Of a stretch of DNA of 64,000 nucleotides, positions 2,799 to 50,832 are shown in pieces. Below the pieces are notes generated by a model, which was not told where the DNA came from, searched no databases, and saw only the letters and a list, made by a program, of their open reading frames with translations. A program made the position numbers and the translations under genes. The stretch's first letter is position 1, and each line of letters opens with the position of its first letter. Location: IMG/VR virus record IMGVR_UViG_3300028676_000003, positions 248,001 through 312,000 of that record. One strand, written 5' to 3'.

Positions 2799-3004
2799 TC
2801 AAATATTAGTTGTACATTTGTACTCTAATTTAAAAACAAGTATTATGGCAGGTGAAATAATCGGAGAAATATTAGTTGGTGCAATTGAACTAGCGGCAGA
2901 AATCGCAATAGATGAAAAGAAGCCAGGATGTGGATGCGCAATTATCATTGCCTTGCTATTAATACTAGGTTTTGGAATTTATTACTTTAACTAAAAACAA
3001 AAAT

Positions 3005-4429
3005 ATGAAAATTAAACAAATTCTTGATGAAATCGCTGGTTTCAGTGGTAAATTGGATAAAGCGAAAGCCTTAACCAAATATAAAGACAATCAATTATTA
3101 AAAGATGTGATTTATCTTGCGCATTCGCCTAGGATTAAATTCTTTATTAAACAAATACCTGAGTATCAGTTCATCGAAGCAACAACTTCACTTGAAGACG
3201 CTTTAAATGACTTAAAACAAATCTCCGACAGATTTTACACAGGTGCGGCCGCTACAGAATTCCTTTTAGGTTTACTATCTTATACGGACCCTGATGATGC
3301 TTACGTAATTGAACGTATCATTGATAAAAATCTTAAGATAGGAATGGACACAGGTATCAATAAGGTAATCCCTAAATTGATTGAAGAAACTCCTTATCAA
3401 GGTGCTACATCATTCTCAGAGAAGGGTGCATCTAAGTTATTAGATAGAAAATCTAGAACTGATAAAAATGGAGTTACAAGTCATGTGATTTCACAGATTA
3501 AAGCTGATGGTTCTTACCGTAATGCAATCATAATTGATGGAAAGGTAGAACTCTTATCAAGACAAGGAGAAGTTTCAACTCTTACAGGTGCCAAGTTCTT
3601 AGATGAACTAGCTCAAATGCCTGACTGTGTTCTAAATGGTGAACTTACTGTTGATGGAATAGAAAACCGTGCAATTGCAAACGGAGTTGTTTCTAGCATC
3701 ATGGATATCACTCAGAAAGCAGAAGAAAGAGGTGAAGTAGAAACAGCTAAGAAAATCAAAGCCTTTACTGAAAAACACGGTGATATGGCAGAAATGATTA
3801 ATAGGTTACGCTTCACGGTTTGGGATATGATTAGTGTAGATGAATACTTAAAAGCAAGTTCAGATTTTCCATATTTGAACCGTTTTACTGGTCTTCAAAC
3901 ACTTTTGATTGAAAAAGCTTTCACAAATATTGAATTGATTGAAACTCTTTTTATTGACTCTTATGAAGAAGCAATGAATCATTTCTTAGACGCTCAAAAA
4001 AGAGGTCTTGAAGGAACAATCATCAAATCAAGTACTGCTGGTTGGAAAGATGGGAAACCAACTTACCAAATCAAAATGAAACTTGAAATGGATATGGACT
4101 TAAGAATCATCGGATTCAACTATGGTACCAAAGGTACTAAGAATGAGCATGTTATTAGTGTTCTACAGTTGGAAAGTGAAGATGGGTTATTGAAGACTAA
4201 TCCTGGTGGAATGACTGAGGCTATGATGGCTGATATCACTGAAAGACAAGATGAACTAATGGGAACAATCGTTCAAATTAGATGTTGCGGGTTATCTCAA
4301 ACAGATAAAGGTTGGTCAACACAACACCCAAGTATTGTTGAACTAAGAACAGATAAAGACTCTTGTGACACACTTGAATCTTGTATCGCTATTGAGAATA
4401 TGGCAAAAACACTAAACGTAAAAAAATAA
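3005..4429 (+). CDS. ATP-dependent DNA ligase (T4 gp30-like)
   Basis: QIKADG (motif I), LNGEL, FTVWD, EGTIIK and IKMK, with a C-terminal OB fold ending HP....R.DK. ATG at 3005 chosen over the upstream TTG. Confidence 0.9.
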   Translation: MKIKQILDEIAGFSGKLDKAKALTKYKDNQLLKDVIYLAHSPRIKFFIKQIPEYQFIEATTSLEDALNDLKQISDRFYTGAAATEFLLGLLSYTDPDDAYVIERIIDKNLKIGMDTGINKVIPKLIEETPYQGATSFSEKGASKLLDRKSRTDKNGVTSHVISQIKADGSYRNAIIIDGKVELLSRQGEVSTLTGAKFLDELAQMPDCVLNGELTVDGIENRAIANGVVSSIMDITQKAEERGEVETAKKIKAFTEKHGDMAEMINRLRFTVWDMISVDEYLKASSDFPYLNRFTGLQTLLIEKAFTNIELIETLFIDSYEEAMNHFLDAQKRGLEGTIIKSSTAGWKDGKPTYQIKMKLEMDMDLRIIGFNYGTKGTKNEHVISVLQLESEDGLLKTNPGGMTEAMMADITERQDELMGTIVQIRCCGLSQTDKGWSTQHPSIVELRTDKDSCDTLESCIAIENMAKTLNVKK

Positions 4430-5825: not shown

Positions 5826-6872
5826 ATGAAGAAAATGATTAAATTTCCGTCTATCGAGCAGTTTCGTACAATTAACGCAACTATCCTTAGACAATTCAAT
5901 TTCGTCGGTTTAGACGAAACGGGAGAAGCTATCTACGATACAAACCTCCCAAAACCAAAGCTTTGGTTCAAAGGTAGTGTAAAATTACATGGTACAAATG
6001 CCGCTGTTTGTTACAATACCGCAGGTGGTTTATGGGCACAATCACGTGAAAGCATAATCACAGTTGAAAATGATAATGCAGGGTTCGCATTCTTTGTGGA
6101 AAGTAACAAAGACGCATTCAACCAATTATTCCGTAAAATTCAAGACGAAACAAGTGTTAGTTTTGAACATAATACGGTAAGTATCTATGGTGAGTGGTGC
6201 GGTGGAAACATCCAAAAAGGTGTTGCGATTACAAACTTGCCTAAGTCATTTTTCATCTTTGGTGTGAAAATCTCACCAATTCGTACAAAAGAGCAAGAAG
6301 AAGATAACAAAGAAGTATCATTTTGGGTAGAGTCAAACTATTTAGAGGTTCCTGAAAATAGAATCTACAATGTTGACAGTTTCCAAACATATGCTATTGA
6401 AATCGACTTCAATAACCCTCAATTAGTACAAGACAAATTAACTGAATTAACACTTGCTGTAGAAGCAGAGTGTCCGATTGGAAAAGCTTTCGGATTCTCA
6501 GGTGTTGGTGAAGGTATTGTTTGGAAAACGGAATTGGATGGAGAGGTCCATAGATTCAAAGTTAAGGGTGATAAACACTCTAGTTCTAAGAGCGAGAAGA
6601 TTGTTAGTATTGACGTTGAAAAATTGGAATCAATCCAAAAATTCATCGAATATGCTGTAACAGAAAGTCGCTTCAAACAAGGTCTTGAAAATGTATTCCC
6701 AAATGAAGAACCTATCGAAATCAAAAAGATGGGTGAACTTATCAAATGGGTAGTTAATGACGTTATCAAAGAAGAGACCGACACAATGGTAGCTAACAAT
6801 ATCGAACCAAAAGAGGTTAATAAATACATCTCTACAAGGGTACGTGAAATGTTCATGGCACTAAGTGTTTAA
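5826..6872 (+). CDS. RNA ligase, Rnl2 family
   Basis: Motifs KFPSIEQF, VKLHGTNA, IYGEWCG, GEGIVW and FKVKG. Confidence 0.85.
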   Translation: MKKMIKFPSIEQFRTINATILRQFNFVGLDETGEAIYDTNLPKPKLWFKGSVKLHGTNAAVCYNTAGGLWAQSRESIITVENDNAGFAFFVESNKDAFNQLFRKIQDETSVSFEHNTVSIYGEWCGGNIQKGVAITNLPKSFFIFGVKISPIRTKEQEEDNKEVSFWVESNYLEVPENRIYNVDSFQTYAIEIDFNNPQLVQDKLTELTLAVEAECPIGKAFGFSGVGEGIVWKTELDGEVHRFKVKGDKHSSSKSEKIVSIDVEKLESIQKFIEYAVTESRFKQGLENVFPNEEPIEIKKMGELIKWVVNDVIKEETDTMVANNIEPKEVNKYISTRVREMFMALSV

Positions 6873-8997: not shown

Positions 8998-10284
8998 ATG
9001 ATAACAAACGAGAATGGTTTAAGATATGCTAAATTGATGCACGTTTCAGTTGATAACGGTCATACAGATAATAGCAATAAAGTTTATATCATGGAAGAAC
9101 TTTCCAATGGTACAATCAAATGTGAATACGGTAGAGTCGGTAATTCGATGGCCGTAGATATCAAACCCGCAAGCAAATGGGATGCAACCTATAAGCAGAA
9201 AACAAGCAAAACGAAGGGTTACACTGATGTAACTGAGTTTATGGCTGAACCTGTTGTAGATGCCGCTAAACCTTCAGGTAACAACCTGATTGATGATATT
9301 CCTGATGCTCTTGTTAAAGAACTTATTAAACGTTTAAGCGACTTCGCAAACAAATCGATTCAACAAAACTATAAGGTAACTCAAGATGCAGTATCTGAGG
9401 CCCAAGTAGTTGCGGCTCAAGCTTTATTAACTAGAATTACAACAACAGTTGCAGTTGGAGTTAGTAAAAATGACTTGAATGAAATGCTTATGCAATTATA
9501 TACGATAATCCCTCGTAACATGAGAAATGTTAAGGATTATTTGTTAGATGAAATCAAAACTGCCGATGATGTAAATCAAGCATTAGAGTTCTTGAATAAA
9601 GAACAAGCTACTCTTGATACAATGGCTGGTCAAGTTGATTTAATAAAGAAACAGAAGCCTGTAGTTGATACTGAAACCAAAGAAGTGAAACCATCAACAT
9701 ATACTATTCTTGACCAAATGGGTATTACAGCTGAGGTTGTAAATGATGCTCCAACTATCAAGATGGTAAGAGATATGCTTGAAGGACATGGTAGAAAACT
9801 TCACAGAGTCTACGCAATTACCAATAAGAAATCACAACCGCTTTACGATACCAAATTGGATTCAAGCAAAAACAAATTGGTTGAACACTTGTTCCACGGT
9901 TCAAGAAATGCCAATTGGTTTAACATTCTTCAAACTGGTCTTATGATTAGACCTTCGGGAGCTGGTTATAATGGTTCTATGTTTGATGATGGTATCTACT
10001 TCGCTAACGATGCAGATAAATCAATGGGTTACACCGATGGTGGTCGTTGGGCAGGTGGTGGAAACGCAAGTTACACTTACTTAGGTGTATTTAGCGTTCA
10101 CTTAGGAAACCAATTACACGTTCATAGACATGATTCTTCATGTTACAAAATTGGAACCAAGTGTAGAAACGAGGGTTATGATTCGGTTTATGCTCACAAA
10201 GGAGCTTCACTTAGAAAAGATGAGTTAATTATTTATAATTCTGCTCAGTGTACTGTTAAATATTTAGTAGAACTTAAAAATTAA
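8998..10284 (+). CDS. PARP-family ADP-ribosyltransferase (WGR + regulatory + catalytic domains)
   Basis: N-terminal NKVY...EYGRVG...KGY (WGR), LYTIIP (regulatory), then LFHGSR..N...IL..GL, GSMFDDGIYFA....KS.GY and DELIIY (H-Y-E triad). Confidence 0.9.
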   Translation: MITNENGLRYAKLMHVSVDNGHTDNSNKVYIMEELSNGTIKCEYGRVGNSMAVDIKPASKWDATYKQKTSKTKGYTDVTEFMAEPVVDAAKPSGNNLIDDIPDALVKELIKRLSDFANKSIQQNYKVTQDAVSEAQVVAAQALLTRITTTVAVGVSKNDLNEMLMQLYTIIPRNMRNVKDYLLDEIKTADDVNQALEFLNKEQATLDTMAGQVDLIKKQKPVVDTETKEVKPSTYTILDQMGITAEVVNDAPTIKMVRDMLEGHGRKLHRVYAITNKKSQPLYDTKLDSSKNKLVEHLFHGSRNANWFNILQTGLMIRPSGAGYNGSMFDDGIYFANDADKSMGYTDGGRWAGGGNASYTYLGVFSVHLGNQLHVHRHDSSCYKIGTKCRNEGYDSVYAHKGASLRKDELIIYNSAQCTVKYLVELKN

Positions 10285-20590: not shown

Positions 20591-20642
20591 ATAACATTTA
20601 GAAATAAGTGTATATTTATAAACAAACAATAAACTAAAAATT

Positions 20643-20717
20643 ATGAAAACTTTAGCAAGCTTATTAGTCATTTTATTATGTTCACTAGTCGTGAACAGGG
20701 TGGGTTATGCCTGTTAA
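20643..20717 (+). CDS. leader peptide 1 (MKTLASLLVILLCSLVVNRVGYAC), Leu/Val/Cys-rich attenuator
   Basis: 24-aa ORF between promoter and terminator; 12 of 24 residues are L, V or C. Confidence 0.8.
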   Translation: MKTLASLLVILLCSLVVNRVGYAC

Positions 20718-20744: not shown

Positions 20745-20781
20745 AATCCCATCTATTAAAATTAGATGGGATTTTTTTTTT
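20745..20781 (+). terminator. intrinsic terminator/attenuator of array 1
   Basis: AATCCCATCTA-loop-TAGATGGGATT plus T-run. Leader segment GGGTGGGTTAT (20698-20708) can pair with the 5' arm. Confidence 0.85.
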
Positions 20782-20789
20782 ACATATAT

Positions 20790-22270: not shown

Positions 22271-22539
22271 CAAAAACAAAGAAAATGGGAATATTAAAAA
22301 TTCATAATGCAGGATTAACAGGGTATTATTTGGAGCAAACTCTTGGTGGTAAACCTCTTATAGATTCAGGACTTATAATTAGTCAAGAAGACGATGATTC
22401 AGATGAACCATCAACAATTGAGCTTCATTATACTGATGAAAAGGACCTAGAAGCTAAGGTATCAATAATTATTGAAATGTTAACTGATAAATAATAGGAA
22501 ATGTCATTTATTTGTTATACCTTTGTAAAAAATTAAGCT

Positions 22540-22950
22540 ATGGATAATGTAATACTACTAGATTTAGACGGAGTTCTGATAACAACGAAGCCTTGGGAAT
22601 CAGATGTAATTATTGAAGACGGATTTGCCCAATTCAACGAAAAATCAGTTGCAAAGCTAAACGAATACTTGGAATCAACAGGCTACGATATAGTATTAAC
22701 TTCATCAAGACGTTATACGACTGAAATAGACCAAATGAACGAGTTTTTCAAGGCAAGAGGTATCAAAGGACAGATAATTCAATATCTTCCGTTATATGAC
22801 CTAGATTTGCGTTATTCAAGATATGATGAGGTAATGAGATTCATTATGAAGCATAGGCCTGAGAATTATTTGGTAATTGATGATGATAAGTCTCTTGCGA
22901 AGTTAGGTAACAACAAATGGATTAAAACTGACCCAATGATTGGTTTATGA
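22540..22950 (+). CDS. HAD-family phosphatase (HAD_SAK-like)
   Basis: LLDLDGVL, IVLTSSRR, R..E, YLVIDDD, TDP..GL. Confidence 0.8.
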   Translation: MDNVILLDLDGVLITTKPWESDVIIEDGFAQFNEKSVAKLNEYLESTGYDIVLTSSRRYTTEIDQMNEFFKARGIKGQIIQYLPLYDLDLRYSRYDEVMRFIMKHRPENYLVIDDDKSLAKLGNNKWIKTDPMIGL

Positions 22951-23183
22951 TAAGATATTTTTGCGATAACAAAAGACATATTGTATGTTTACCTTATTCC
23001 GTTGAAAATCTTCATAAGATGGCTGAGGACTTGGGTTTAAACAGAAGATGGTTTCATAAAGGGAAAAATAACAATTCTCATTATGATATGCCGATAAAAG
23101 AAATAGCAGTTATTACTGCAAAGTGTGAATTAGTAACCAGTGAAGAAATAGTTGATATTATACGTGGAAGATTTACAAAATAA
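22947..23183 (+). CDS. DUF4031-like protein
   Basis: LH.MA..LGL.RRWFH.......HYD.P. Confidence 0.6.
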   Translation: MIRYFCDNKRHIVCLPYSVENLHKMAEDLGLNRRWFHKGKNNNSHYDMPIKEIAVITAKCELVTSEEIVDIIRGRFTK

Positions 23184-23348
23184 GTTAGAAATACTAAATA
23201 GCAATTATTGGGAACATTTCAAGTTTGCTAAGGACTTGGCAGGGTTTTTAGCCCATGACCATCCTAGAAGACGAAGAATAGAAGAGAAGTTAAACGAAAT
23301 GGTTGATGAAATTCAAGAATTGAATCGACTATTACAAAATAAAAACAA

Positions 23349-23617: not shown

Positions 23618-24886
23618 ATGGAAAATACAGAATATGTCTGTGTAATGTTCCCTTATCCTTCAGGAGATGGATTACATGTTGGGCATGTCTATAACTACGC
23701 AATCGTCGATAGTTATTGCCGATGGAAACGTTACAATAAAATTCCAGTCTTTCAACCATTTGGATATGATTCATTTGGATTGCCAGCGGAAAACTACGCA
23801 AAAAAGGTCGGTAGAGACCCAAAAGAAGTCACTTACGAAAATATCGCAAAGTTCCGTAAACAAATGGAACGAATGAACACTCAATATGAAGAATTATTAG
23901 TTACATCTGATGAATCTTACTATGTATGGAGTCAAAGATTATTTACTGAATTACATAGCAGAGGGTTAGCCTACCAAAAGATGGGTCCTGTAAATCATTG
24001 TTCAAGCTGTGAAACAGTCTTGGCTAATGAACAAGTTAAGGACGACCATTGTGAAAGATGTGGTACAAGAGTAGAAATCAAAGATTTAAACCAATGGTAT
24101 TTCAAAATTACTGACTATAAGCAACGATTAATTGATAACTTGGATAAGATTGATTATCCTGAGAAAACAAAGAAACAGCAATTGCATTGGTTAGAGAACT
24201 TAAATGATTGGTGTGTTTCAAGACAGCGAAAATGGGGAACTCCAATACCGTTGATTGATTCAGAAGACACCTTAGATACATTCGTTGATAGTTCATTCTA
24301 TTTTTTAAGATACTTGGACCCAAATAACTTAGAAGAATTGGTTGATATCAATAAAGCTAAGCAAGTTGACTTATATGTTGGTGGAAACGAACATGCTTGT
24401 ATGCACTTGATTTATGCTAGGTTTATCACGATGTTCTTACATGATTGTGGTTATATCCCTTTTGATGAGCCTTTTAAGAAGGTAATTCACCAAGGAATGA
24501 TTACTCATAATGGAGAAAAAATGTCCAAGTCAAAAGGCAACGTAATAAATCCTGATGATTATGACCCTGATGAATTGAGGTTATATTCAATGTTTATCGG
24601 CCATTATTTTGACGGTGGAGATTGGGATGATTCAAAGATTAGCGGAATTAGACGTTTTATTGGAAGATTTGGTAAATGGACAAATGAATCTACTCAAGAA
24701 GGTGAAACTATTGACTTAACAGCATTTAAAGAGACTATTAATGGTTATGTAATATCGTTTAAGTTCAATAAGGTTGTTAGTACATTCATGGAGTTTTACA
24801 ACAAGAATAAGAACAAAACATTAAGTGTATCAACAGCTAACGATTTGATTGAAATCTTACGTGTGTTTGCACCGAGTTTTAAATAA
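23618..24886 (+). CDS. leuS: minimal leucyl-tRNA synthetase (no CP1 editing domain, truncated C-terminus)
   Basis: MFPYPSG.GLHVGH, GYDSFGLPAEN, Zn knuckle, DWCVSRQR.WGTPIP, DTFVDSS.YFLRY, GG.EHA.MHL.YARF and KMSKS; only 422 aa. Confidence 0.9.
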   Translation: MENTEYVCVMFPYPSGDGLHVGHVYNYAIVDSYCRWKRYNKIPVFQPFGYDSFGLPAENYAKKVGRDPKEVTYENIAKFRKQMERMNTQYEELLVTSDESYYVWSQRLFTELHSRGLAYQKMGPVNHCSSCETVLANEQVKDDHCERCGTRVEIKDLNQWYFKITDYKQRLIDNLDKIDYPEKTKKQQLHWLENLNDWCVSRQRKWGTPIPLIDSEDTLDTFVDSSFYFLRYLDPNNLEELVDINKAKQVDLYVGGNEHACMHLIYARFITMFLHDCGYIPFDEPFKKVIHQGMITHNGEKMSKSKGNVINPDDYDPDELRLYSMFIGHYFDGGDWDDSKISGIRRFIGRFGKWTNESTQEGETIDLTAFKETINGYVISFKFNKVVSTFMEFYNKNKNKTLSVSTANDLIEILRVFAPSFK

Positions 24887-29435: not shown

Positions 29436-29463
29436 AATAATTTAAAAATAATCATTAAAAAAC

Positions 29464-29495
29464 TTGACTTATGTACTAACTTTTAGTACCTTTGT
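29464..29495 (+). promoter_or_regulatory. promoter upstream of leader 2
   Basis: TTGACT ... TACCTTTGT, followed by ATATTTAT at 29498. Confidence 0.8.
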
Positions 29496-29530
29496 ATATA
29501 TTTATTAAACAAACGAATAAACACAATATT

Positions 29531-29614
29531 ATGAGAACACTTACAAACATATTTGATTTTGCATTTACAGCAGCCGAAGAGGATTACTCTTGGGAAGGTC
29601 AACTAGTGTCGTAA
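29531..29614 (+). CDS. leader peptide 2 (MRTLTNIFDFAFTAAEEDYSWEGQLVS), Phe/Asp/Ala/Glu-rich attenuator
   Basis: 27-aa ORF; codons 8-18 (FDFAFTAAEED) are 10/11 F, D, A or E. Confidence 0.8.
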   Translation: MRTLTNIFDFAFTAAEEDYSWEGQLVS

Positions 29615-29640
29615 GTTAAGTAATATTAACAATACAATCA

Positions 29641-29674
29641 AGAGTCTGACCATAAAACGTCAGACTTTTTTTTT
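29641..29674 (+). terminator. intrinsic terminator/attenuator of array 2
   Basis: AGTCTGAC-loop-GTCAGACT plus T-run. Leader segment GGTCAACT (29597-29604) can pair with the 5' arm. Confidence 0.8.
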
Positions 29675-29749
29675 GGAAAAAATGTTCTTTAAAATTTTGA
29701 AATTAAGAAAATAAGTATTACCTTTGTATCATCAAAAAATATAAGGATT

Positions 29750-30205
29750 ATGAAAAAGTTTTTACAATATTTAACGCTTAGGGATTTTAATGATGAATTT
29801 TTATTTCCATCACCAATTGGACATATTGTTTTTGTGATATTATTTGTAATATTCGTAGGAACATGTAGTCATAAAAGACAAAATGAAGAACCAAAGGTAA
29901 ACCATATCATAATGGAAGATGCTGTACAAGTTGGTGATTCAATCGAAGCTCCATGGGCTGAGAAAACAGATTCAACGGAAGTCGAGTTTAGTGTTCCAAA
30001 AGGAACATATTGGTCAAGCGAAGAAACAAAGTTACCAAGAGGTATTGTTAAAGTAACTGACCACGCTCATGGTAGTAATGGTAAAAGTGATAACAAAAGT
30101 GATAATTATGTTACTATAAAGGGAACCGATGGTCAGTTAACTATTGTTAGAGATGTTGAGATTGATTTATATTTGAATCTTCAAGTTGGAGATACAATTA
30201 AATAA
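29750..30205 (+). CDS. membrane-anchored hypothetical protein
   Basis: One hydrophobic helix; own promoter at about 29719. Confidence 0.6.
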   Translation: MKKFLQYLTLRDFNDEFLFPSPIGHIVFVILFVIFVGTCSHKRQNEEPKVNHIIMEDAVQVGDSIEAPWAEKTDSTEVEFSVPKGTYWSSEETKLPRGIVKVTDHAHGSNGKSDNKSDNYVTIKGTDGQLTIVRDVEIDLYLNLQVGDTIK

Positions 30206-30277
30206 AAAAAATATCAAAAAACATTAGGTTATTAAATTTAAAAGTTATACCTTTGTACTATCAAAATAACGAAAGAT

Positions 30278-30562
30278 ATGATAAGAATACTAGTAGAATT
30301 TGAGTTTATTCCTGAGCATACAGAAGAAGCTAAAAAGCTTATAAAAGAGTTAGCAATCAAATCAGCTCAAGAAAAAGGATGTGTGATGTATCATGCACTT
30401 GAAAGTCTTAATGATGAAAATTCAGTGATACTTTATGAAAGTTTCGCAGATAAAGAAGCACAAGACTTCCATAAAACGACAAGTCATTACAAGGAAATCT
30501 TGCAAGAGAAATTACCAAGCTTGATTAAAGAACGTAAGGTTCGTTTCTTGGAAATATTATAA
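30278..30562 (+). CDS. antibiotic biosynthesis monooxygenase (ABM/YgiN-like) protein
   Basis: S..E.GC..Y ... LYE.F.D.EA...H..T.HY. Confidence 0.85.
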   Translation: MIRILVEFEFIPEHTEEAKKLIKELAIKSAQEKGCVMYHALESLNDENSVILYESFADKEAQDFHKTTSHYKEILQEKLPSLIKERKVRFLEIL

Positions 30563-30911: not shown

Positions 30912-31059
30912 GGGAATGTACGTTCAGCGGTCCGATTGGCTCTTAGGAGATGGTTTAAAACAATTGGGAAGTGTGTCAAGAAATTGATTGGGTAAAAACA
31001 CTATCAGAACGACTCCCGTGAAGGGGAGAAAGTCGCAGGTTCGAATCCTGTCGTTCCTA
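30912..31059 (+). ncRNA. tRNA-like RNA with an ~80-nt D-loop and a 6-nt anticodon loop
   Basis: GGGAATG/CGTTCCT acceptor, CGTTC/GAACG D stem, CTCCC-GTGAAG-GGGAG, T arm TTCGAAT. Confidence 0.6.
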
Positions 31060-31129
31060 CTATGAAGTACCTACGGCAATAGGTATAACAGAGCCAACGA
31101 ATTTGAATTGCCGTTTGAAGGTGTTGGTA

Positions 31130-31200
31130 GAAGCGTTCGTCTAGTGGACCAGGACACAGCCAATGGGGCTGAAACACAGGTTCGAGTCCTGTACGCTTTG
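31130..31200 (+). ncRNA. Glu-type tRNA body with a 5-nt anticodon loop
   Basis: GAAGCGT/ACGCTTT, D arm GTCTAGTGGACCAGGAC, CAGCC-AATGG-GGCTG. Confidence 0.65.
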
Positions 31201-31290
31201 CAATTAAGAGCACGTGGAAGTACGATAGCCCCCACAGTATAGAAAAAAACTAAGGTATCGTTGACTTCATGGTGGAAAGAAACCATATTT

Positions 31291-31944: not shown

Positions 31945-32646
31945 ATGAGTAAAAACACAAAAAAAGAAAGTTATAAGCCTTTTATTAAGCTTATTAACGA
32001 AAGAGCTAAAATTTGGAAGCTTATCGATGATTTAGGTTACATCGAGTTAGAAGAACCTATTCATCACGGTTACGATTCGTTTTTCGTATTAAGAGACGAT
32101 ATTTCAAGAAGAAAAGATGCTCCTTTATTAGAAGATTTGTTAAAGAATTATACTAGTGTTGCATGGTGTAGAAATAAAGACTTCATTGTCAAAAGAAGAG
32201 GTAAGAAAGAAAAAATTGAACCTAGTCTTGTTCACGTAAGTGTAGCGGCATATTTGTTATTTTCACCAAAGAAACAAGAGTTCTTTACCAAGCACTTCAT
32301 TAGAGGTTGGCATAGTGTTCGAGAAGTATATTGTCTTAATTTACCAAGACACTATTACGTAATCAAAAAGAAAAAAAGTTACATTACACATAGAAAGGTA
32401 ATGGATGCTCAATTGCAAAGTGACTTGGACTTGGTTTATGACCAAATCAACGAAATCACAGAAGTTTCAAACCCTTATAACAATCCTTGTGGTTGGGATG
32501 TAAGATTTTGGAACAAGGCTTCAAGAAGAAAAGATAATGTTATAACTAGCAATATCAAAAACCACTTCGATGGAGAACTTGATAGTGATTTATTAGAATA
32601 TGGTCTTTCTGAGAAAGCAAGACATGGAGCAAATTGGTATCGATAA
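31945..32646 (+). CDS. basic hypothetical protein
   Basis: 233-aa K/R-rich ORF. Confidence 0.65.
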   Translation: MSKNTKKESYKPFIKLINERAKIWKLIDDLGYIELEEPIHHGYDSFFVLRDDISRRKDAPLLEDLLKNYTSVAWCRNKDFIVKRRGKKEKIEPSLVHVSVAAYLLFSPKKQEFFTKHFIRGWHSVREVYCLNLPRHYYVIKKKKSYITHRKVMDAQLQSDLDLVYDQINEITEVSNPYNNPCGWDVRFWNKASRRKDNVITSNIKNHFDGELDSDLLEYGLSEKARHGANWYR

Positions 32647-33034: not shown

Positions 33035-33105
33035 TTGGTACTAGTTTAATTGGAAAAAACGGGTGCGCTGAGCATTTAATATGGGTTCGAGTCCCATGTA
33101 TCGAA
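33035..33105 (+). ncRNA. tRNA-like RNA with a 5-nt anticodon loop
   Basis: TTGGTAC/GTATCGA, D stem GTTT/AAAC, GGTGC-GCTGA-GCATT, T arm ATGGG-TTCGAGT-CCCAT. Confidence 0.6.
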
Positions 33106-33334
33106 CTAATTTCAACTGAAGATAAATGTAAGTATCGTGCTTAATAACCACGGAAACCTTGGTGAGGGGTCCATAGTCATCACTTATATCATTGCTAAGA
33201 ATGAGTATTTATTGTAAGATATTTAAAACATCATTTATTCGGCCAATGTGGTTGATTTATAAGTGATTAAATAGGGTGTAGAGACGTTTGATGCTCTACT
33301 AGGTATTCCACTTAGAAATGGATTGAAATTTTAA

Positions 33335-33533: not shown

Positions 33534-33618
33534 GGGAGTGTAGCTCAGTTGGTAGAGCAGGATGTATAGGAATGCATACTTTAAATCTGTGTCAATGGTT
33601 CGATTCCATTCACTCTTA
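33534..33618 (+). ncRNA. tRNA-like RNA with an enlarged anticodon arm
   Basis: Canonical D arm (AGCTCAGTTGGTAGAGC) and T arm; about 20 nt in the anticodon-loop position. Confidence 0.6.
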
Positions 33619-33627
33619 CAAAATATT

Positions 33628-34104: not shown

Positions 34105-34902
34105 ATGAGAACAAGAGTAGCACCGTCACCAACTGGAATTTTCCATTTGGGAACACTTAGAACAGCATTATTAAACTATTTACTGGCTAAGGCAAACGGT
34201 GGTGATTTCATTCTCCGTATTGATGATACCGATGTAGTTAGAAATGATGATAAATACATAGATTATATCTATGACCAAATGAAACACTTTGGCCTTAATC
34301 ATGACCTAACGTTTAAACAGTCAGATAGACTAGCACGATATGCAGAAGTTGCCAATAAGATTGGTTTTGCTTCACCTGATGGAATAAAGTTGAATATGGG
34401 TGACTATGATATGGTTATTCTTAGAACAAATGGATATCCAACATATAACTTTGCAAGTATTCTTGATGATTATGACTACGATATCACTGATTTTGTCAGA
34501 GGTGTAGACCACATCAACAATCTAGATAAACAAAAACATATTTGGGACTTGATTGCAAGTGTTTATGGTGATAAGCCTTTTCCAAATGTAATTCATGCTG
34601 GATTGTTATTTGATGGGAAGAGTAAGTTATCGAAAAGAAGCGGAAACGGAACGACAGCTGACTATGTTGACTTTGATAAGGATGCATTATTAAATTGGTT
34701 GTTTAAGATGGGTTGGTCTCATAAGGACCCGAATTTCGATAGAGATTTTCCTTTTTTACTGATGATTCAAATGATTGCTTTCTTTAATGATGGTAATATC
34801 ACGAAATCTAACTGTAAGATTGATAGACCAAAGCTTGATTTTTTGAATAAAAAACATAAAAACTTTAAGAAATTCAAAGAAAGTTTTGGTGAATTCAAAT
34901 AA
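34105..34902 (+). CDS. glutamyl-tRNA-synthetase-family catalytic domain only (GluRS/GluQ-like)
   Basis: RTRVAPSPTG.FHLGTLR, LRIDDTD, PTYNFA..DD..ITD.VRG.DH, KLSKR. 265 aa with no anticodon-binding domain. Confidence 0.85.
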   Translation: MRTRVAPSPTGIFHLGTLRTALLNYLLAKANGGDFILRIDDTDVVRNDDKYIDYIYDQMKHFGLNHDLTFKQSDRLARYAEVANKIGFASPDGIKLNMGDYDMVILRTNGYPTYNFASILDDYDYDITDFVRGVDHINNLDKQKHIWDLIASVYGDKPFPNVIHAGLLFDGKSKLSKRSGNGTTADYVDFDKDALLNWLFKMGWSHKDPNFDRDFPFLLMIQMIAFFNDGNITKSNCKIDRPKLDFLNKKHKNFKKFKESFGEFK

Positions 34903-34941
34903 AAGTTATACCTTTGTCCTCTAATCTTAAAACATAAGAAA

Positions 34942-46055: not shown

Positions 46056-46404
46056 TAGAGCCATTTGGTTCTTTGAGTTGATACTTGGTAAAGGAATAAG
46101 GGGCCTAGCATTTTGGCCCTTTATCTTTGTACCATCGACAACAGTCGTTGATGAGGTTCTGCTAAATCACGAACGTATTCATTTAAAGCAACAACTCGAA
46201 ATGCTGATTATACCGTTTTATATATGGTATTTGATTGCATTAAGGCGAAAGGGTTATATGGGTATTAGCTTTGAAAAAGAAGCATACGCCAATGAGAGAG
46301 ACTTAGGTTATTTAACCAAAAGAAAGAATTATTCATTTTTAAAATATCAAAATGAAAATAGAAATAAACAAAATAAAAACAGTACCAAAGGGTTTAGGTT
46401 TTAA
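46039..46404 (+). CDS. HExxH-motif protein
   Basis: LNHERIHLKQQ ... ISFEKEAY. Confidence 0.65.
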   Translation: MLIVSDRAIWFFELILGKGIRGLAFWPFIFVPSTTVVDEVLLNHERIHLKQQLEMLIIPFYIWYLIALRRKGYMGISFEKEAYANERDLGYLTKRKNYSFLKYQNENRNKQNKNSTKGFRF

Positions 46405-47527
46405 TTTCTGCGTTTACGGTGAACCATCTGAAGAAATTCAAAAATGGTGTAAGTATTGGGATTTTAAAACAGAACCATCAGGTCCATATACCAATATTAT
46501 CCTTACAGATGATGTTGACATTAAAAATATCTTTGTTGGTCCTAAGAAATACCATTATATTGATGGTTTTAGCCCAAATCTTAACAAGAACCTACATGTA
46601 GGTCACTTATCAAATCTTGTATTAGCAAATGCGTTCCAACACTTGGGTCTTGGAGATGAATTTATCTCGATATTTGGTGATACGCTAAATGGTGAGGTTA
46701 CCAAAGATGAGGCTTATTACAATTTCCTTAAAATGACCAAGTTTTTTGGTTATAAGGTTGATAAAGAGTATTTTGCTTCTGAAATGAAGCTTGATGAAAA
46801 GCTTTTAAAAGACGGCCAAGGTGACTATGAAGGTTCAAAGGTATTTGACTTAGAAGATGAACAAATCGTAGGTATTAAATCCAGCGGAGCAACAACATAC
46901 TTCTATCAAGACGTAGCACTAGCTAATGAATTGAGTGCTTCTACCTTGTATCTAACTGGCTTGGAGCAAGAAAATCATTTTAATTCGCTTAAGAAGTTAT
47001 TTCCAAATAACAATCATATCGGTCTTGGACTTGTTTATCTTGATGGTAAAAAGATGTCTAGCAGTGAAGGAAATATCATTTATATGAATGAGTTCATTCA
47101 TGGACTTATGGAAAAGTTTAATCATGATGCTGGTGTTGTAGCTAATATTATTATTGGACAAATCCTTAAATCTGAGCCAAAGTCAAAGAAAACAATTGAT
47201 TCTAGTCTTATAGATAATCCAAGATTATCATTAGGATTATACTTGAGCTACACGTTAGCACATGTTAAGAGTTGTGGTGTCACAACCAAGCAGATTTATA
47301 AGTATCAATCTAAAAAGTTACAATTTGCTGAATTAAGAGCTAAAACAAACTTATCACCAAATGTCTTATTTGATGAATTGGTGAGCCATTGTAAACATAT
47401 CAACGCTTTATATGAGACTCATTATATCAAGGGGAATGAAGAGAACATTGAGTTGTTTTCTAATTTGATTTCTGACTTGGAGTTGGGTATGTTGAGAGTG
47501 GGTATGTATTCAGTAGAAAAAGTTTAA
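46352..47527 (+). CDS. argS: arginyl-tRNA synthetase (compact)
   Basis: FSPNLNK.LHVGH, KS.G.TTY..QD, EQ..HF, KMSSSEG, YL.Y..A; C-term LGM...G. Confidence 0.85.
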   Translation: MKIEINKIKTVPKGLGFNFCVYGEPSEEIQKWCKYWDFKTEPSGPYTNIILTDDVDIKNIFVGPKKYHYIDGFSPNLNKNLHVGHLSNLVLANAFQHLGLGDEFISIFGDTLNGEVTKDEAYYNFLKMTKFFGYKVDKEYFASEMKLDEKLLKDGQGDYEGSKVFDLEDEQIVGIKSSGATTYFYQDVALANELSASTLYLTGLEQENHFNSLKKLFPNNNHIGLGLVYLDGKKMSSSEGNIIYMNEFIHGLMEKFNHDAGVVANIIIGQILKSEPKSKKTIDSSLIDNPRLSLGLYLSYTLAHVKSCGVTTKQIYKYQSKKLQFAELRAKTNLSPNVLFDELVSHCKHINALYETHYIKGNEENIELFSNLISDLELGMLRVGMYSVEKV

Positions 47528-49315: not shown

Positions 49316-49387
49316 CTAGAAAAAAAATAAAAAATAATTGGTAAAACACTTGACTTGTAAAGAAAATTGTCGTACCTTTGTAGTATA

Positions 49388-50195
49388 TTAATAAGATGTT
49401 GGTTCGCCCATGCTTTTTAACATAAGGCCGCTTATGGTCTTCAGGATAAACATAGTGATATGTAGAAAGCGATTTAGCGGAAGCAAGATTGCGTTGGGAA
49501 TTTATTACCAATCCGAGTAAGCGATGATAAACGCAGTGTTTATGTAAAGGCAACAAGAGACAAAATCTGTTGGAGTTGGAAGTAAACATTATAGCCCAAA
49601 TTTTGATTCATGGGTTATTGAGTACGAAAGTATAATAGAGGTTTATCAGGATTTGGTGAATAACTGTAAAAGGGGAATAAGCTGGGTCCAGTATTTAGAT
49701 TATGGTGTAGCTGAAAGGTGATATTAATCGAAGGTACCATGTTCGAGAGAGCATATCGGGGTGTCGTTAGCTGGGCTACTCAAAAGGTAGTACGTTAGCA
49801 AATCTGAGGACACATCCTGAACTGAAATGAATCGATGCAATTTATTTAGGTTTTTAACCTGAAATATCTTTTAAGAAAAGGAAATTTTATAAAAAGCAAA
49901 AGTTCCTCAGAACATGATTTGAAAAATGAGTTATACTGTTGTAAAATACAGTTGTTGCTAGGCCGCAAGCCAAAGTGACAAAATAAAGTAAGTAGTTCTA
50001 AGCTAATAGCCCGCAAGCTATGCAGACTCGCAAGGTCAGTCGGATGAAAATGGAGTTTATATAGAATCATGTAGTGATTGCAGAATCGTATATCTGTCTC
50101 ATTGTTGACTATTCCTGTAGCAATATAGGTGTGTGTAACAAACCGAAAGGTTTCAAAACGTCAACAGTATAGCTGAACACTCAGGCGACTACAAA
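49388..50195 (+). ncRNA. large structured ncRNA, GOLLD-like
   Basis: About 800 nt with no plausible + ORF and its own promoter (49350-49381). Many GNRA-capped hairpins (GCAA, GAAA) and a CTCAAAAGG element, next to tRNAs. Family assignment is from memory only. Confidence 0.55.
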
Positions 50196-50574: not shown

Positions 50575-50665
50575 ATAAGAAATAAAAAAATAAACAGAAA
50601 AACAAAACTTTTGCTAAAAGCAATATATTTATAATAAACGTAGAAATACACAACAAACAGAAATT

Positions 50666-50773
50666 ATGACAACAAGTACCACATATCAAACGCAAAAACA
50701 ACAACCTAAAGGCGGGAAGCCTTATGGCTTGGCTGGGTGTGTCAACAACTTGTTTGACTTAGTTACAATATAA
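50666..50773 (+). CDS. leader peptide 3 (MTTSTTYQTQKQQPKGGKPYGLAGCVNNLFDLVTI), Thr/Tyr/Gln/Lys/Pro/Gly-rich attenuator
   Basis: 35-aa ORF; codons 2-21 are 19/20 T, Y, Q, K, P or G. Confidence 0.85.
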   Translation: MTTSTTYQTQKQQPKGGKPYGLAGCVNNLFDLVTI

Positions 50774-50797
50774 TTAGTAGTAATACTGATTTTGTAG

Positions 50798-50832
50798 ACC
50801 CAGCTTAATGTAAAAATTAGGCTGGGTTTTTT
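50798..50832 (+). terminator. intrinsic terminator/attenuator of array 3
   Basis: ACCCAGCTTAAT-loop-ATTAGGCTGGGT plus T-run. The leader carries an identical GGCTGGGT at 50731-50738. Confidence 0.85.

Follow-up and report, generated by a model that had tools for sequence, protein, structure and literature searches.

A predicted ribosome-mediated attenuator in front of a huge-phage tRNA array, its sister units and regrouped units of other huge phages

Phage tRNA sets are usually viewed as constitutive codon-usage fixes or as spares against tRNA-cutting defences, and to our knowledge the control of the large sets is essentially not understood. The locus described here raises the question of why a short open reading frame (ORF) rich in codons for Phe, Asp, Ala and Glu, followed by an intrinsic terminator, stands in front of an array of tRNA genes for the same amino acids. 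It lies in bases 248001-312000 of the virus record IMGVR_UViG_3300028676_000003 (368,549 bp, 33.6% G+C); this stretch of 64,000 nucleotides (nt) is called the window, and positions refer to it unless the genome is named. The element, termed L3, is read here as a transcription attenuator of the ribosome-mediated (leader-peptide) type, which would control a phage tRNA operon, with a probability of roughly 0.8. Most likely, tRNAs for Phe, Glu, Asp and Ala are made by the phage only when these codons are read with difficulty.

The promoter of L3 spans 29463-29494 on the + strand, with a −33 element CTTGACTT at 29463-29470 after an A-rich stretch and a −7 element TACCTTTG at 29487-29494. The leader ORF (29531-29614, + strand) begins 37 nt downstream and comprises 27 codons, from the ATG at 29531 to the TAA at 29612-29614. 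The 5' untranslated region (5'-UTR) contains an AU-rich motif, ATATTTATTAAAC (29498-29510, + strand), which is common to all four leaders of this genome and to their relatives, and which may aid the start of translation or mark the start of transcription. In the form ATATTTAT[A/T]AAAC, the motif stands between the promoter and every leader ORF, at 29498-29510, 20623-20636 and 50626-50639 in the window. The N-terminus of the peptide, MRTLTNI, is an A-rich module that is present in the other leaders too, and codons 8-18 (29552-29584, + strand) form the regulatory block FDFAFTAAEED. Ten of the 11 block codons are decoded by the array tRNAs Phe(GAA), Asp(GUC), Ala(UGC) and Glu(UUC), and a content of 10 F/D/A/E residues in 12 was reached by 149 of 100,000 random proteome segments. 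The intrinsic terminator at 29640-29674 (+ strand) consists of an 11-bp stem (29640-29650 with 29659-29669), a loop (29651-29658) and a run of nine T (29666-29674); it has an energy of −14 kcal/mol with a z-score of −5.65 and was also picked up by a terminator scan. The original prediction had placed this leader and terminator at 29531-29674, and all of their elements lie there.

The leader promoter, composed of CTTGACTT, 16 nt and TACCTTTG, has the −33 TTG, the −7 TAnnTTTG and the spacing of about 19 nt of a Bacteroidota sigma-A type promoter, the published consensus being TTG...TAnnTTTG (PMC7641319, PMC2483708). The window contains 22 copies of the motif TACCTTTGT, each on the + strand, against 1.05 expected; those at 29487, 29719 and 30248 are among them. 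Because TACCTTTGT and the upstream TTG fit the Bacteroidota consensus, a Bacteroidota host most likely supplies the RNA polymerase that transcribes the phage genome. A sigma-70 promoter scan was uninformative on the window (80 sites vs 72 expected).

Four regions can be distinguished in the leader transcript. Region 1, TTGATTTTGC (29553-29562, + strand), is predicted to pair with region 2, GGGAAGGTCAACT (29592-29604, + strand), if it is free of ribosomes, and the 1:2 pairing is part of the full-length minimum-energy fold here and in nearly all relatives. Region 2 is the 5' strand of the predicted antiterminator; since it lies only 8-20 nt before the stop codon, it would be masked by a ribosome at the stop. 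Regions 3 and 4 are the 5' arm (29640-29650) and the 3' arm (29659-29669) of the terminator, respectively. The pairing of region 2 with region 3, which involves GGTCAACT at 29597-29604 and AGTCTGACC at 29643-29651, comprises 8 bp with one bulged C and has a duplex energy of −9.4 kcal/mol. When the terminator 3' arm is omitted, this pairing becomes the minimum-energy fold (−13.0 kcal/mol, z-score −2.57), and 1 of 200 shuffled sequences folds as well. A small hairpin that includes the stop codon (29611-29635, + strand) forms the tip of the antiterminator and recurs with altered sequence in nearly all relatives. In ribosome-masking folds calculated in silico, the antiterminator can form as long as the A site has not passed codon 16, and it is lost from codon 20 onwards, also with the ribosome at the stop. 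The whole leader fold has a z-score of −4.0. As modelled, L3 has the classical 1:2 / 2:3 / 3:4 attenuator layout.

In the proposed mechanism, host RNA polymerase would start at the 29463-29494 promoter and transcribe the 27-codon leader. With ample charged Phe, Asp, Ala and Glu tRNAs, the ribosome would reach the stop codon at 29612 and cover region 2, so that the terminator hairpin (29640-29669) would form and transcription would stop in the T-run. With slow decoding of any of these codons, the ribosome would stall in codons 8-18 and region 2 would pair with the terminator 5' arm; with this arm sequestered, the polymerase would continue into the tRNA array and the GluRS-like gene behind it. 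The position of the ribosome would thus decide termination, and scarcity would give read-through. Three sister units would act likewise for the remaining 16 amino acids. Because the product is the tRNA itself, the circuit would constitute a negative feedback on decoding capacity, separately for each codon set. Candidate triggers would be the AT-rich codon demand of the phage, a loss of host tRNAs late in infection, and tRNA-cutting host enzymes.

The sister units were found by reading downstream of every promoter of the leader class. L1 (genome 234285-234386, outside the window) carries the block NIHMISISNWRRNSH in front of tRNAs for Ser, Trp, Asn, His, Ile, Met and Arg. L2 (20558-20782, + strand) consists of a promoter, a 24-codon leader (20643-20717) with the block LLVILLCSLVV and a terminator (20745-20782), and its array of Cys, Val, four Leu, Val and Leu tRNAs is followed by a LeuRS-like core. 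L4 (50542-50832, + strand) consists of a promoter, a 35-codon leader (50666-50773) with the block TTYQTQKQQPKGGKPYG and a terminator (50796-50832) in front of Gln, Lys, Pro, Gly, Tyr and Thr tRNAs. The promoter class of L3 also drives L1 and L2, and the −33 element of L4 is GCTTGCTT; the stop codon is TAA in all four leaders. When the whole genome was scanned on both strands for a promoter, an ORF of 15-50 amino acids (aa) and a terminator, only the four units and one other were obtained.

The regulatory codon sets of the four units, NIHMSWR, LVC, FDAE and TYQKPG, are disjoint and jointly comprise all 20 amino acids. In codons 2-21 of the leaders, 58 of the 80 codons match the leader's own array, compared with 20.0 ± 3.8 after shuffling the residues among the leaders; none of 200,000 shuffles reached the observed value, and the true leader-to-array assignment was the best of 24. 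The leader codon counts correlate with the tRNA gene copy numbers (Pearson r = 0.66). L1 also samples isoacceptors, as it contains the Arg codons AGA and CGT and the Ser codons TCG and AGC/AGT, and the tRNAs have UCU, ACG, UGA and GCU anticodons. The leader codons end mostly in A or T and the phage tRNAs have mostly U34 anticodons, which fits a phage of such low G+C content, whose codon demand may exceed the supply of the host.

Each of the four units has, before its stop codon, a segment complementary to its own terminator arm, and these segments are unrelated in sequence: ACGGGT in L1, GGGTGGGTTAT in L2, GGTCAACT in L3 and GGCTGGGT in L4. The arrays behind L2 and L4 have no promoter besides that of the leader, and their first tRNAs follow the T-run at 8 nt (tRNA-Cys, L2) and 6 nt (tRNA-Gln, L4); because of this proximity, both arrays need read-through of the terminator. 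A consensus promoter with a protein-coding ORF is inserted inside the L2 array at 22518-23300, so that the attenuator of L2 can also be bypassed for the distal tRNAs and the LeuRS-like gene. Two arrays are closed by cognate mini-synthetases, one GluRS-like after L3 and one LeuRS-like after L2. The latter, a truncated catalytic core of 422 aa (23618-24886; TIGR00396, 399 bits, E 3e-119), begins 22 nt after the last tRNA-Leu.

An uncultured huge phage, LR745206.1 (634,780 bp, 61 tRNAs), which was reached through a weak tRNA match, has at least seven units. Their leaders begin with the A-rich module seen here, but the groupings differ, namely H/K/F/W, S/R, Y/E, I/G/A, T/M/N/L/V/I, P/D and Q. There the block HKNFSKSHKWF stands before His, Phe, Trp and Lys tRNAs, SKSSSRSSS before Arg and Ser, SYESYYEE before Glu and Tyr, ISIAVIGNGAGAI before Ile, Gly and Ala, MNLNMTMNLTLNVVNITL before Asn, Arg, Leu, Val, Ile, Thr and Met, PVNPQPQDQDP before Pro and Asp, and QQIQQQQ before Gln. 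The true assignment was the best of 5,040 permutations, and six of the seven units have, close to where the ORF ends, a segment complementary to the terminator 5' arm, for example CTGAGGGTT with AACCCTCAG. In place of the AU-rich motif, these leaders have TAATATATAAGAAAYA right before the ATG. Pro/Asp and Gln units were also found in LR756502.1 (642 kb), and the tRNA region of Agrobacterium phage Atu_ph07 gave no convincing unit. The agreement of leader codons with downstream tRNAs, which had been proposed for L3, therefore holds for all four units of the present genome and for homologous, regrouped units of two other huge phages. Judged from the sequences, the co-variation of leader and array content across differing partitions of the code is the strongest argument that the leaders read the decoding of their own tRNAs.

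Some LR745206.1 units directly follow a preceding tRNA: the Gln leader lacks a separate promoter, and for the Ser/Arg leader there is only a weak TAnnTTTG match 28 nt before the ATG (L083:2139-2255, L081:2631-2758). Because of this arrangement, attenuators seem to act in series within one transcription unit.

From these units a wider statement can be made, which we hold to be probable, with somewhat less assurance than the reading of L3 itself. Huge phages with Bacteroidota-type promoters would carry modular sensors of tRNA demand, codon by codon, in which each array, in some cases with a mini-synthetase, stands behind a "bar-coded" leader and a subset of tRNAs is transcribed only when its codons limit translation. 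These would be the first tRNA genes under ribosome-mediated attenuation, and the sensors would have been re-programmed many times by changes of the codon block (four groupings here and at least seven in LR745206.1).

The same mechanism could respond to another signal. If the leaders reported amino-acid supply through tRNA charging, they would be reporters of host starvation, and the mini-synthetases and co-transcribed proteins would be the main products. Classical attenuators such as the trp, his and pheST leaders sense charged tRNA, and the two arrays that end in a synthetase-like gene cognate to one of the leader amino acids are in keeping with such a role. However, starvation is not relieved by extra tRNA, the genes behind the terminators are overwhelmingly tRNA genes whose copy number is tracked by the leader codon counts, and no synthetase is directly attached to the L4 array or to the LR745206.1 arrays. 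This version is therefore possible but clearly the less favoured one.

The conservation of L3 was determined from relatives of the leader, which were collected from IMG/VR and metagenome contigs with an 18-mer and a 21-mer of the block, chance matches being removed. The FDAE leader was obtained in 34 distinct sequences, each with a terminator, and follows the pattern M-(K/R)-T-x-x-N-I-FDFAF-(F)-AAE-(E/A)-D, with 11-13 F/D/A/E codons in a row. In the contigs that reach far enough, the first gene of the array is tRNA-Phe, or tRNA-Glu in two of them, and Glu, Asp and Ala tRNAs come next. Changes in the block are synonymous or remain within the set, as seen in Glu17/Ala, in Thr13 of the window versus Phe in relatives and in an inserted Glu; one exception is a relative with an inserted Asn. 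In the L4 family, the order of the residues is permuted and their composition retained, as predicted by selection on codon content and not on peptide sequence. Outside the block, GGGAAGGTCAACTA is retained despite a 1-nt deletion, so that it encodes W-E-G-Q-L in the window and L-G-R-S-T in relatives; its retention across reading frames indicates selection on the RNA. The bases of region 2 are also retained, with one reading frame in the window and another in relatives. Relatives keep the L1, L2 and L4 leaders together with their arrays as well, and many of them have an extra small hairpin in the 5'-UTR.

The two strands of the predicted antiterminator also co-vary. RNAalifold recovered little because the terminators align poorly, and folds of the individual sequences, together with a test of pairing with own versus other arms, were used in its place. 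When the terminator 3' arm is omitted, nearly all members fold into the same long stem, which is composed of the region 2/terminator arm helix, a second helix of TTGTCA with TGATAA and the stop-codon hairpin at the tip. Compensatory pairs between region 2 and the arm are TGGTCA/TGACCA, GGTCGA/TCGACC, AGGGTC/GACCCT, GGTCAAAC/GTTTGGC and TTAGGG/CCCTA, the last of which comes from a member with a wholly different terminator. The mean pairing of region 2 with its own arm was −10.57 kcal/mol, compared with −8.85 kcal/mol for the other arms (22 distinct arms), and none of 100,000 permutations reached this. The pairing of GGTCAACT with the terminator 5' arm, another element of the original prediction, is thus borne out as a predicted antiterminator that co-varies with the terminator arm across relatives.

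These observations also bear on the possibility that the terminator is merely leaky, setting a low and constant transcription of the array, and that the ORF serves ribosome loading, protection of the RNA or production of a peptide acting in trans. An action in trans is known elsewhere for leader peptides and for terminated attenuator RNAs (PMC6614838, PMC7298713). A leaky terminator would leave without account, however, the equality of leader codons and array tRNAs in 4 + 7 + 2 units, as well as the complement to the unit's own terminator arm that precedes the stop codon in units of unrelated sequence, and we consider it improbable.

Between the terminator of L3 and its first tRNA lie two genes with promoters of their own, as had been noted in the original prediction. 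Inserted gene 1 (29719-30205, + strand) has the promoter TACCTTTG at 29719-29726 and an ORF at 29750-30205, whose product of 151 aa has a hydrophobic N-terminus and gave no family match. Inserted gene 2 (30248-30562, + strand) has a promoter at 30248-30255 and an ORF at 30278-30562 that encodes 94 aa with an ABM domain (PF03992, E 6e-15); it ends 5 nt before tRNA-Phe with no terminator behind it. They had been considered as possible later insertions, and a check of synteny in relatives agrees. In most relatives, tRNA-Phe stands directly behind the terminator, usually 63-270 nt after the leader stop, so that the two genes are lineage-specific and account for the gap of 954 nt in the window. A few other lineages have different insertions between leader and first tRNA (461, 491 and 793 nt).

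The tRNA array of L3 (30568-33701, + strand) reads Phe, Phe, Glu, Glu, Asp, Asp, Glu, Gln(CUG), Ala, an odd tRNA and Ala, with an ORF of 233 aa inside it (31945-32646). The statement that its tRNAs are exactly Phe, Glu, Asp and Ala is correct for the well-scoring ones (Phe twice, Glu three times, Asp twice, Ala twice) and does not cover the others, since the Gln(CUG) tRNA, the odd tRNA of 86 nt and a His(atg) called by ARAGORN alone are also there. The array also has a tRNA-like remnant with an intact T-arm; the odd members other than the Gln(CUG) and 86-nt tRNAs lie at 31130-31201 and 30990-31062. Neither a consensus promoter nor a terminator was found inside the array or anywhere between 30248 and 34909, which places the GluRS-like gene in the same transcription unit as the array. 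This gene (34105-34902, + strand), expected downstream from the outset, encodes a catalytic core of 265 aa without an anticodon-binding domain (PF00749, E 5e-45; TIGR00464, 205 bits, below cut-off) and is the last of the unit, the next promoter being at 34909. As a synteny anchor the gene was of little use, since no tRNA array was found close to it at four of the six related loci. One relative of 464 kb (G002) has seven tRNAs and one promoter of the leader class, with no leader behind it.

The two inserted promoters are what would be expected if L3 were an independent small-protein gene with a constitutive terminator, the array being driven only from 29719 and 30248 and the match in composition being coincidental; the strong terminator also suits this explanation. 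It is contradicted by most relatives, in which tRNA-Phe directly follows the terminator and leaves no room for a promoter, by the 8 and 6 nt between T-run and first tRNA in L2 and L4, by a match in composition that none of the 200,000 shuffles attained and that is re-created with other groupings elsewhere, and by the tail of the ORF, part of which is conserved as RNA despite a change of frame. It is accordingly rated as very improbable, slightly more so than the leaky terminator.

Several points weigh against attenuation as the explanation of L3. The promoters at 29719 and 30248 can feed the L3 array past the attenuator, so that the caveat of a bypass stands. They probably add transcription outside attenuator control, and the L3 copy may for this reason be only partly regulated. 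The Gln(CUG) tRNA of the array (33035-33106, 40 bits) has no codon in the leader block, nor has the 86-nt odd tRNA with its anticodon loop of 8 nt (33534-33619, 45 bits), which is retained behind tRNA-Ala at the same place in relatives. The energies are modest in part: the antiterminator duplex of L3, −9.4 kcal/mol, is the weakest of the four units and is matched by 17% of shuffles, and the 1:2 helix is of ordinary energy (z-score −1.27; 21 of 200 shuffles as good). In the family, the GGTCA/TGACC core is mostly conserved and not co-varying, and the RNAalifold consensus of 15 members is a 5-bp GGTCA/TGACC helix with one compensatory change only. The coupling of transcription and translation in the presumably Bacteroidota host is an assumption. 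Finally, the sequence matched only DNA metagenomes and two RNA-labelled contig sets, whose matches of 150-190 nt are directionless and silent on termination.

The phage units belong by their predicted structure to the class of leader-peptide attenuators. As in the trp, his, leu, thr, ilv and pheA leaders, a short ORF with a cluster of regulatory codons and an intrinsic terminator precede the regulated genes, region 2 is predicted to pair with either region 1 or the terminator 5' arm, and the position of the stop codon would let a ribosome that completes the ORF mask region 2; as in the ilv and thr leaders, one leader would sense several amino acids. The downstream genes of L3 handle the amino acids of its leader, through tRNA-Phe, Glu, Asp and Ala and a GluRS-like protein and not through biosynthetic enzymes. 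Unlike biosynthetic leaders, the phage units would regulate tRNA genes and a mini-synthetase, so that the sensed molecule would be the product; their blocks cover three to seven amino acids and the units together all 20, and they are carried by a phage with Bacteroidota-type promoters. The closest known system is the pheST attenuator of E. coli, in which the Phe codons of the pheM leader control a synthetase operon. There a translation gene is governed by leader codons cognate to it, and the parallels here are the GluRS-like and LeuRS-like genes at the array ends; pheM, however, senses one amino acid and controls a synthetase, whereas L3 would sense Phe, Asp, Ala and Glu and its cargo is mainly tRNAs.

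T-box leaders, which regulate genes of aminoacylation, are similar in that the status of a tRNA decides between their terminator and their antiterminator. Their mode of action is different: the RNA itself binds the uncharged tRNA, no ribosome is needed, and the element has one specifier codon and a conserved T-box sequence; none of these features is present in L3. An element of this kind, or a protein-mediated riboswitch that binds a tRNA or another factor and makes translation of the ORF irrelevant, is the least credible of the explanations, since one specifier codon cannot explain blocks of three to seven amino acids and since conservation extends to the ORF, to its start codon and to where its stop lies with respect to region 2.

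A control that keeps an accessory tRNA array off until translation is stressed is known from the trn operon of Anabaena, in which 26 tRNA genes are repressed by TrcR and induced under translational stress (PMC10272220). There a protein repressor acts on the whole array at initiation, in contrast to the codon-set-specific attenuation of each sub-array proposed here. No description of leader-peptide attenuators before tRNA genes was found in the searchable full-text literature, which does not cover most subscription journals; the units of LR745206.1 and LR756502.1 stand in published genomes, and this literature gave no description of them either. If the reading of the units as attenuators is correct, the phage gauges decoding capacity for each codon set and answers with the matching tRNAs, and attenuation acquires targets of a new kind, which are controlled by sensing the very molecule that they encode. 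For synthetic biology, the units would then be small sensors of tRNA availability that can be re-programmed; in the annotation of huge phages, they would serve as a sequence signature.

The record sequence was found by a search of sequencing runs in peat, soil and freshwater metagenomes. A search for close relatives among GenBank phages gave matches of tRNA size only, and assembled bacterial genomes give no host because both matches, to Parafilimonas and Paraglaciecola metagenome-assembled genomes, are chance matches. The genome has 62 tRNA genes spanning 224978-302525, together with a tmRNA and a GOLLD RNA. The tmRNA (RF00023, 66 bits, above cut-off) lies upstream of the tRNA region at genome 223383-223757 (L045:1384-1758). 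The GOLLD RNA (RF02032) at 49756-50187 of the window (feature 49349-50187) scored 95.6 bits with an E of 6e-24, under the curated cut-off of 150; like the leaders, it is preceded by a CTTGACTT/TACCTTTG-type promoter, and it lies just upstream of the L4 unit. In the region 19000-56000 of the window and in the genome stretch L045, no match at E ≤ 0.01 was obtained for the T-box riboswitch (RF00230) or for the Rfam families Phe_leader, Leu_leader, His_leader, Thr_leader and Trp_leader.

At genome 224621-224977 (L045:2621-2977), about 330 nt separate a promoter of the leader class from Met-Pro-Met tRNAs; this segment contains no leader-type ORF, has no Rfam match and may be a structured RNA of a new type. 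A tRNA with a CUA anticodon (an amber suppressor, "Pyl" according to ARAGORN) lies directly behind its own promoter at genome 228804-228879 (L045:6805-6879), and some regions of the genome may have TAG recoded. A small ORF of about 60 aa at genome 234447-234647 (L045:12447-12647), which separates the L1 terminator from the first tRNA-Ser, is conserved here and in a relative (G001) and would be co-regulated with the L1 array. A weak ArgRS-like ORF was noted at 46352-47527 of the window. Near the beginning of the window are genes for an Rnl1-like RNA ligase (737-1861), an ATP-dependent ligase-domain protein (2972-4429), an Rnl2-like RNA ligase (5826-6872) and a protein with a PARP catalytic domain (8998-10284), a set that suggests a toolkit for tRNA repair or counter-defence. 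The two RNA ligases hint at a conflict with tRNA-cutting host enzymes, which would be a plausible trigger of the attenuators.

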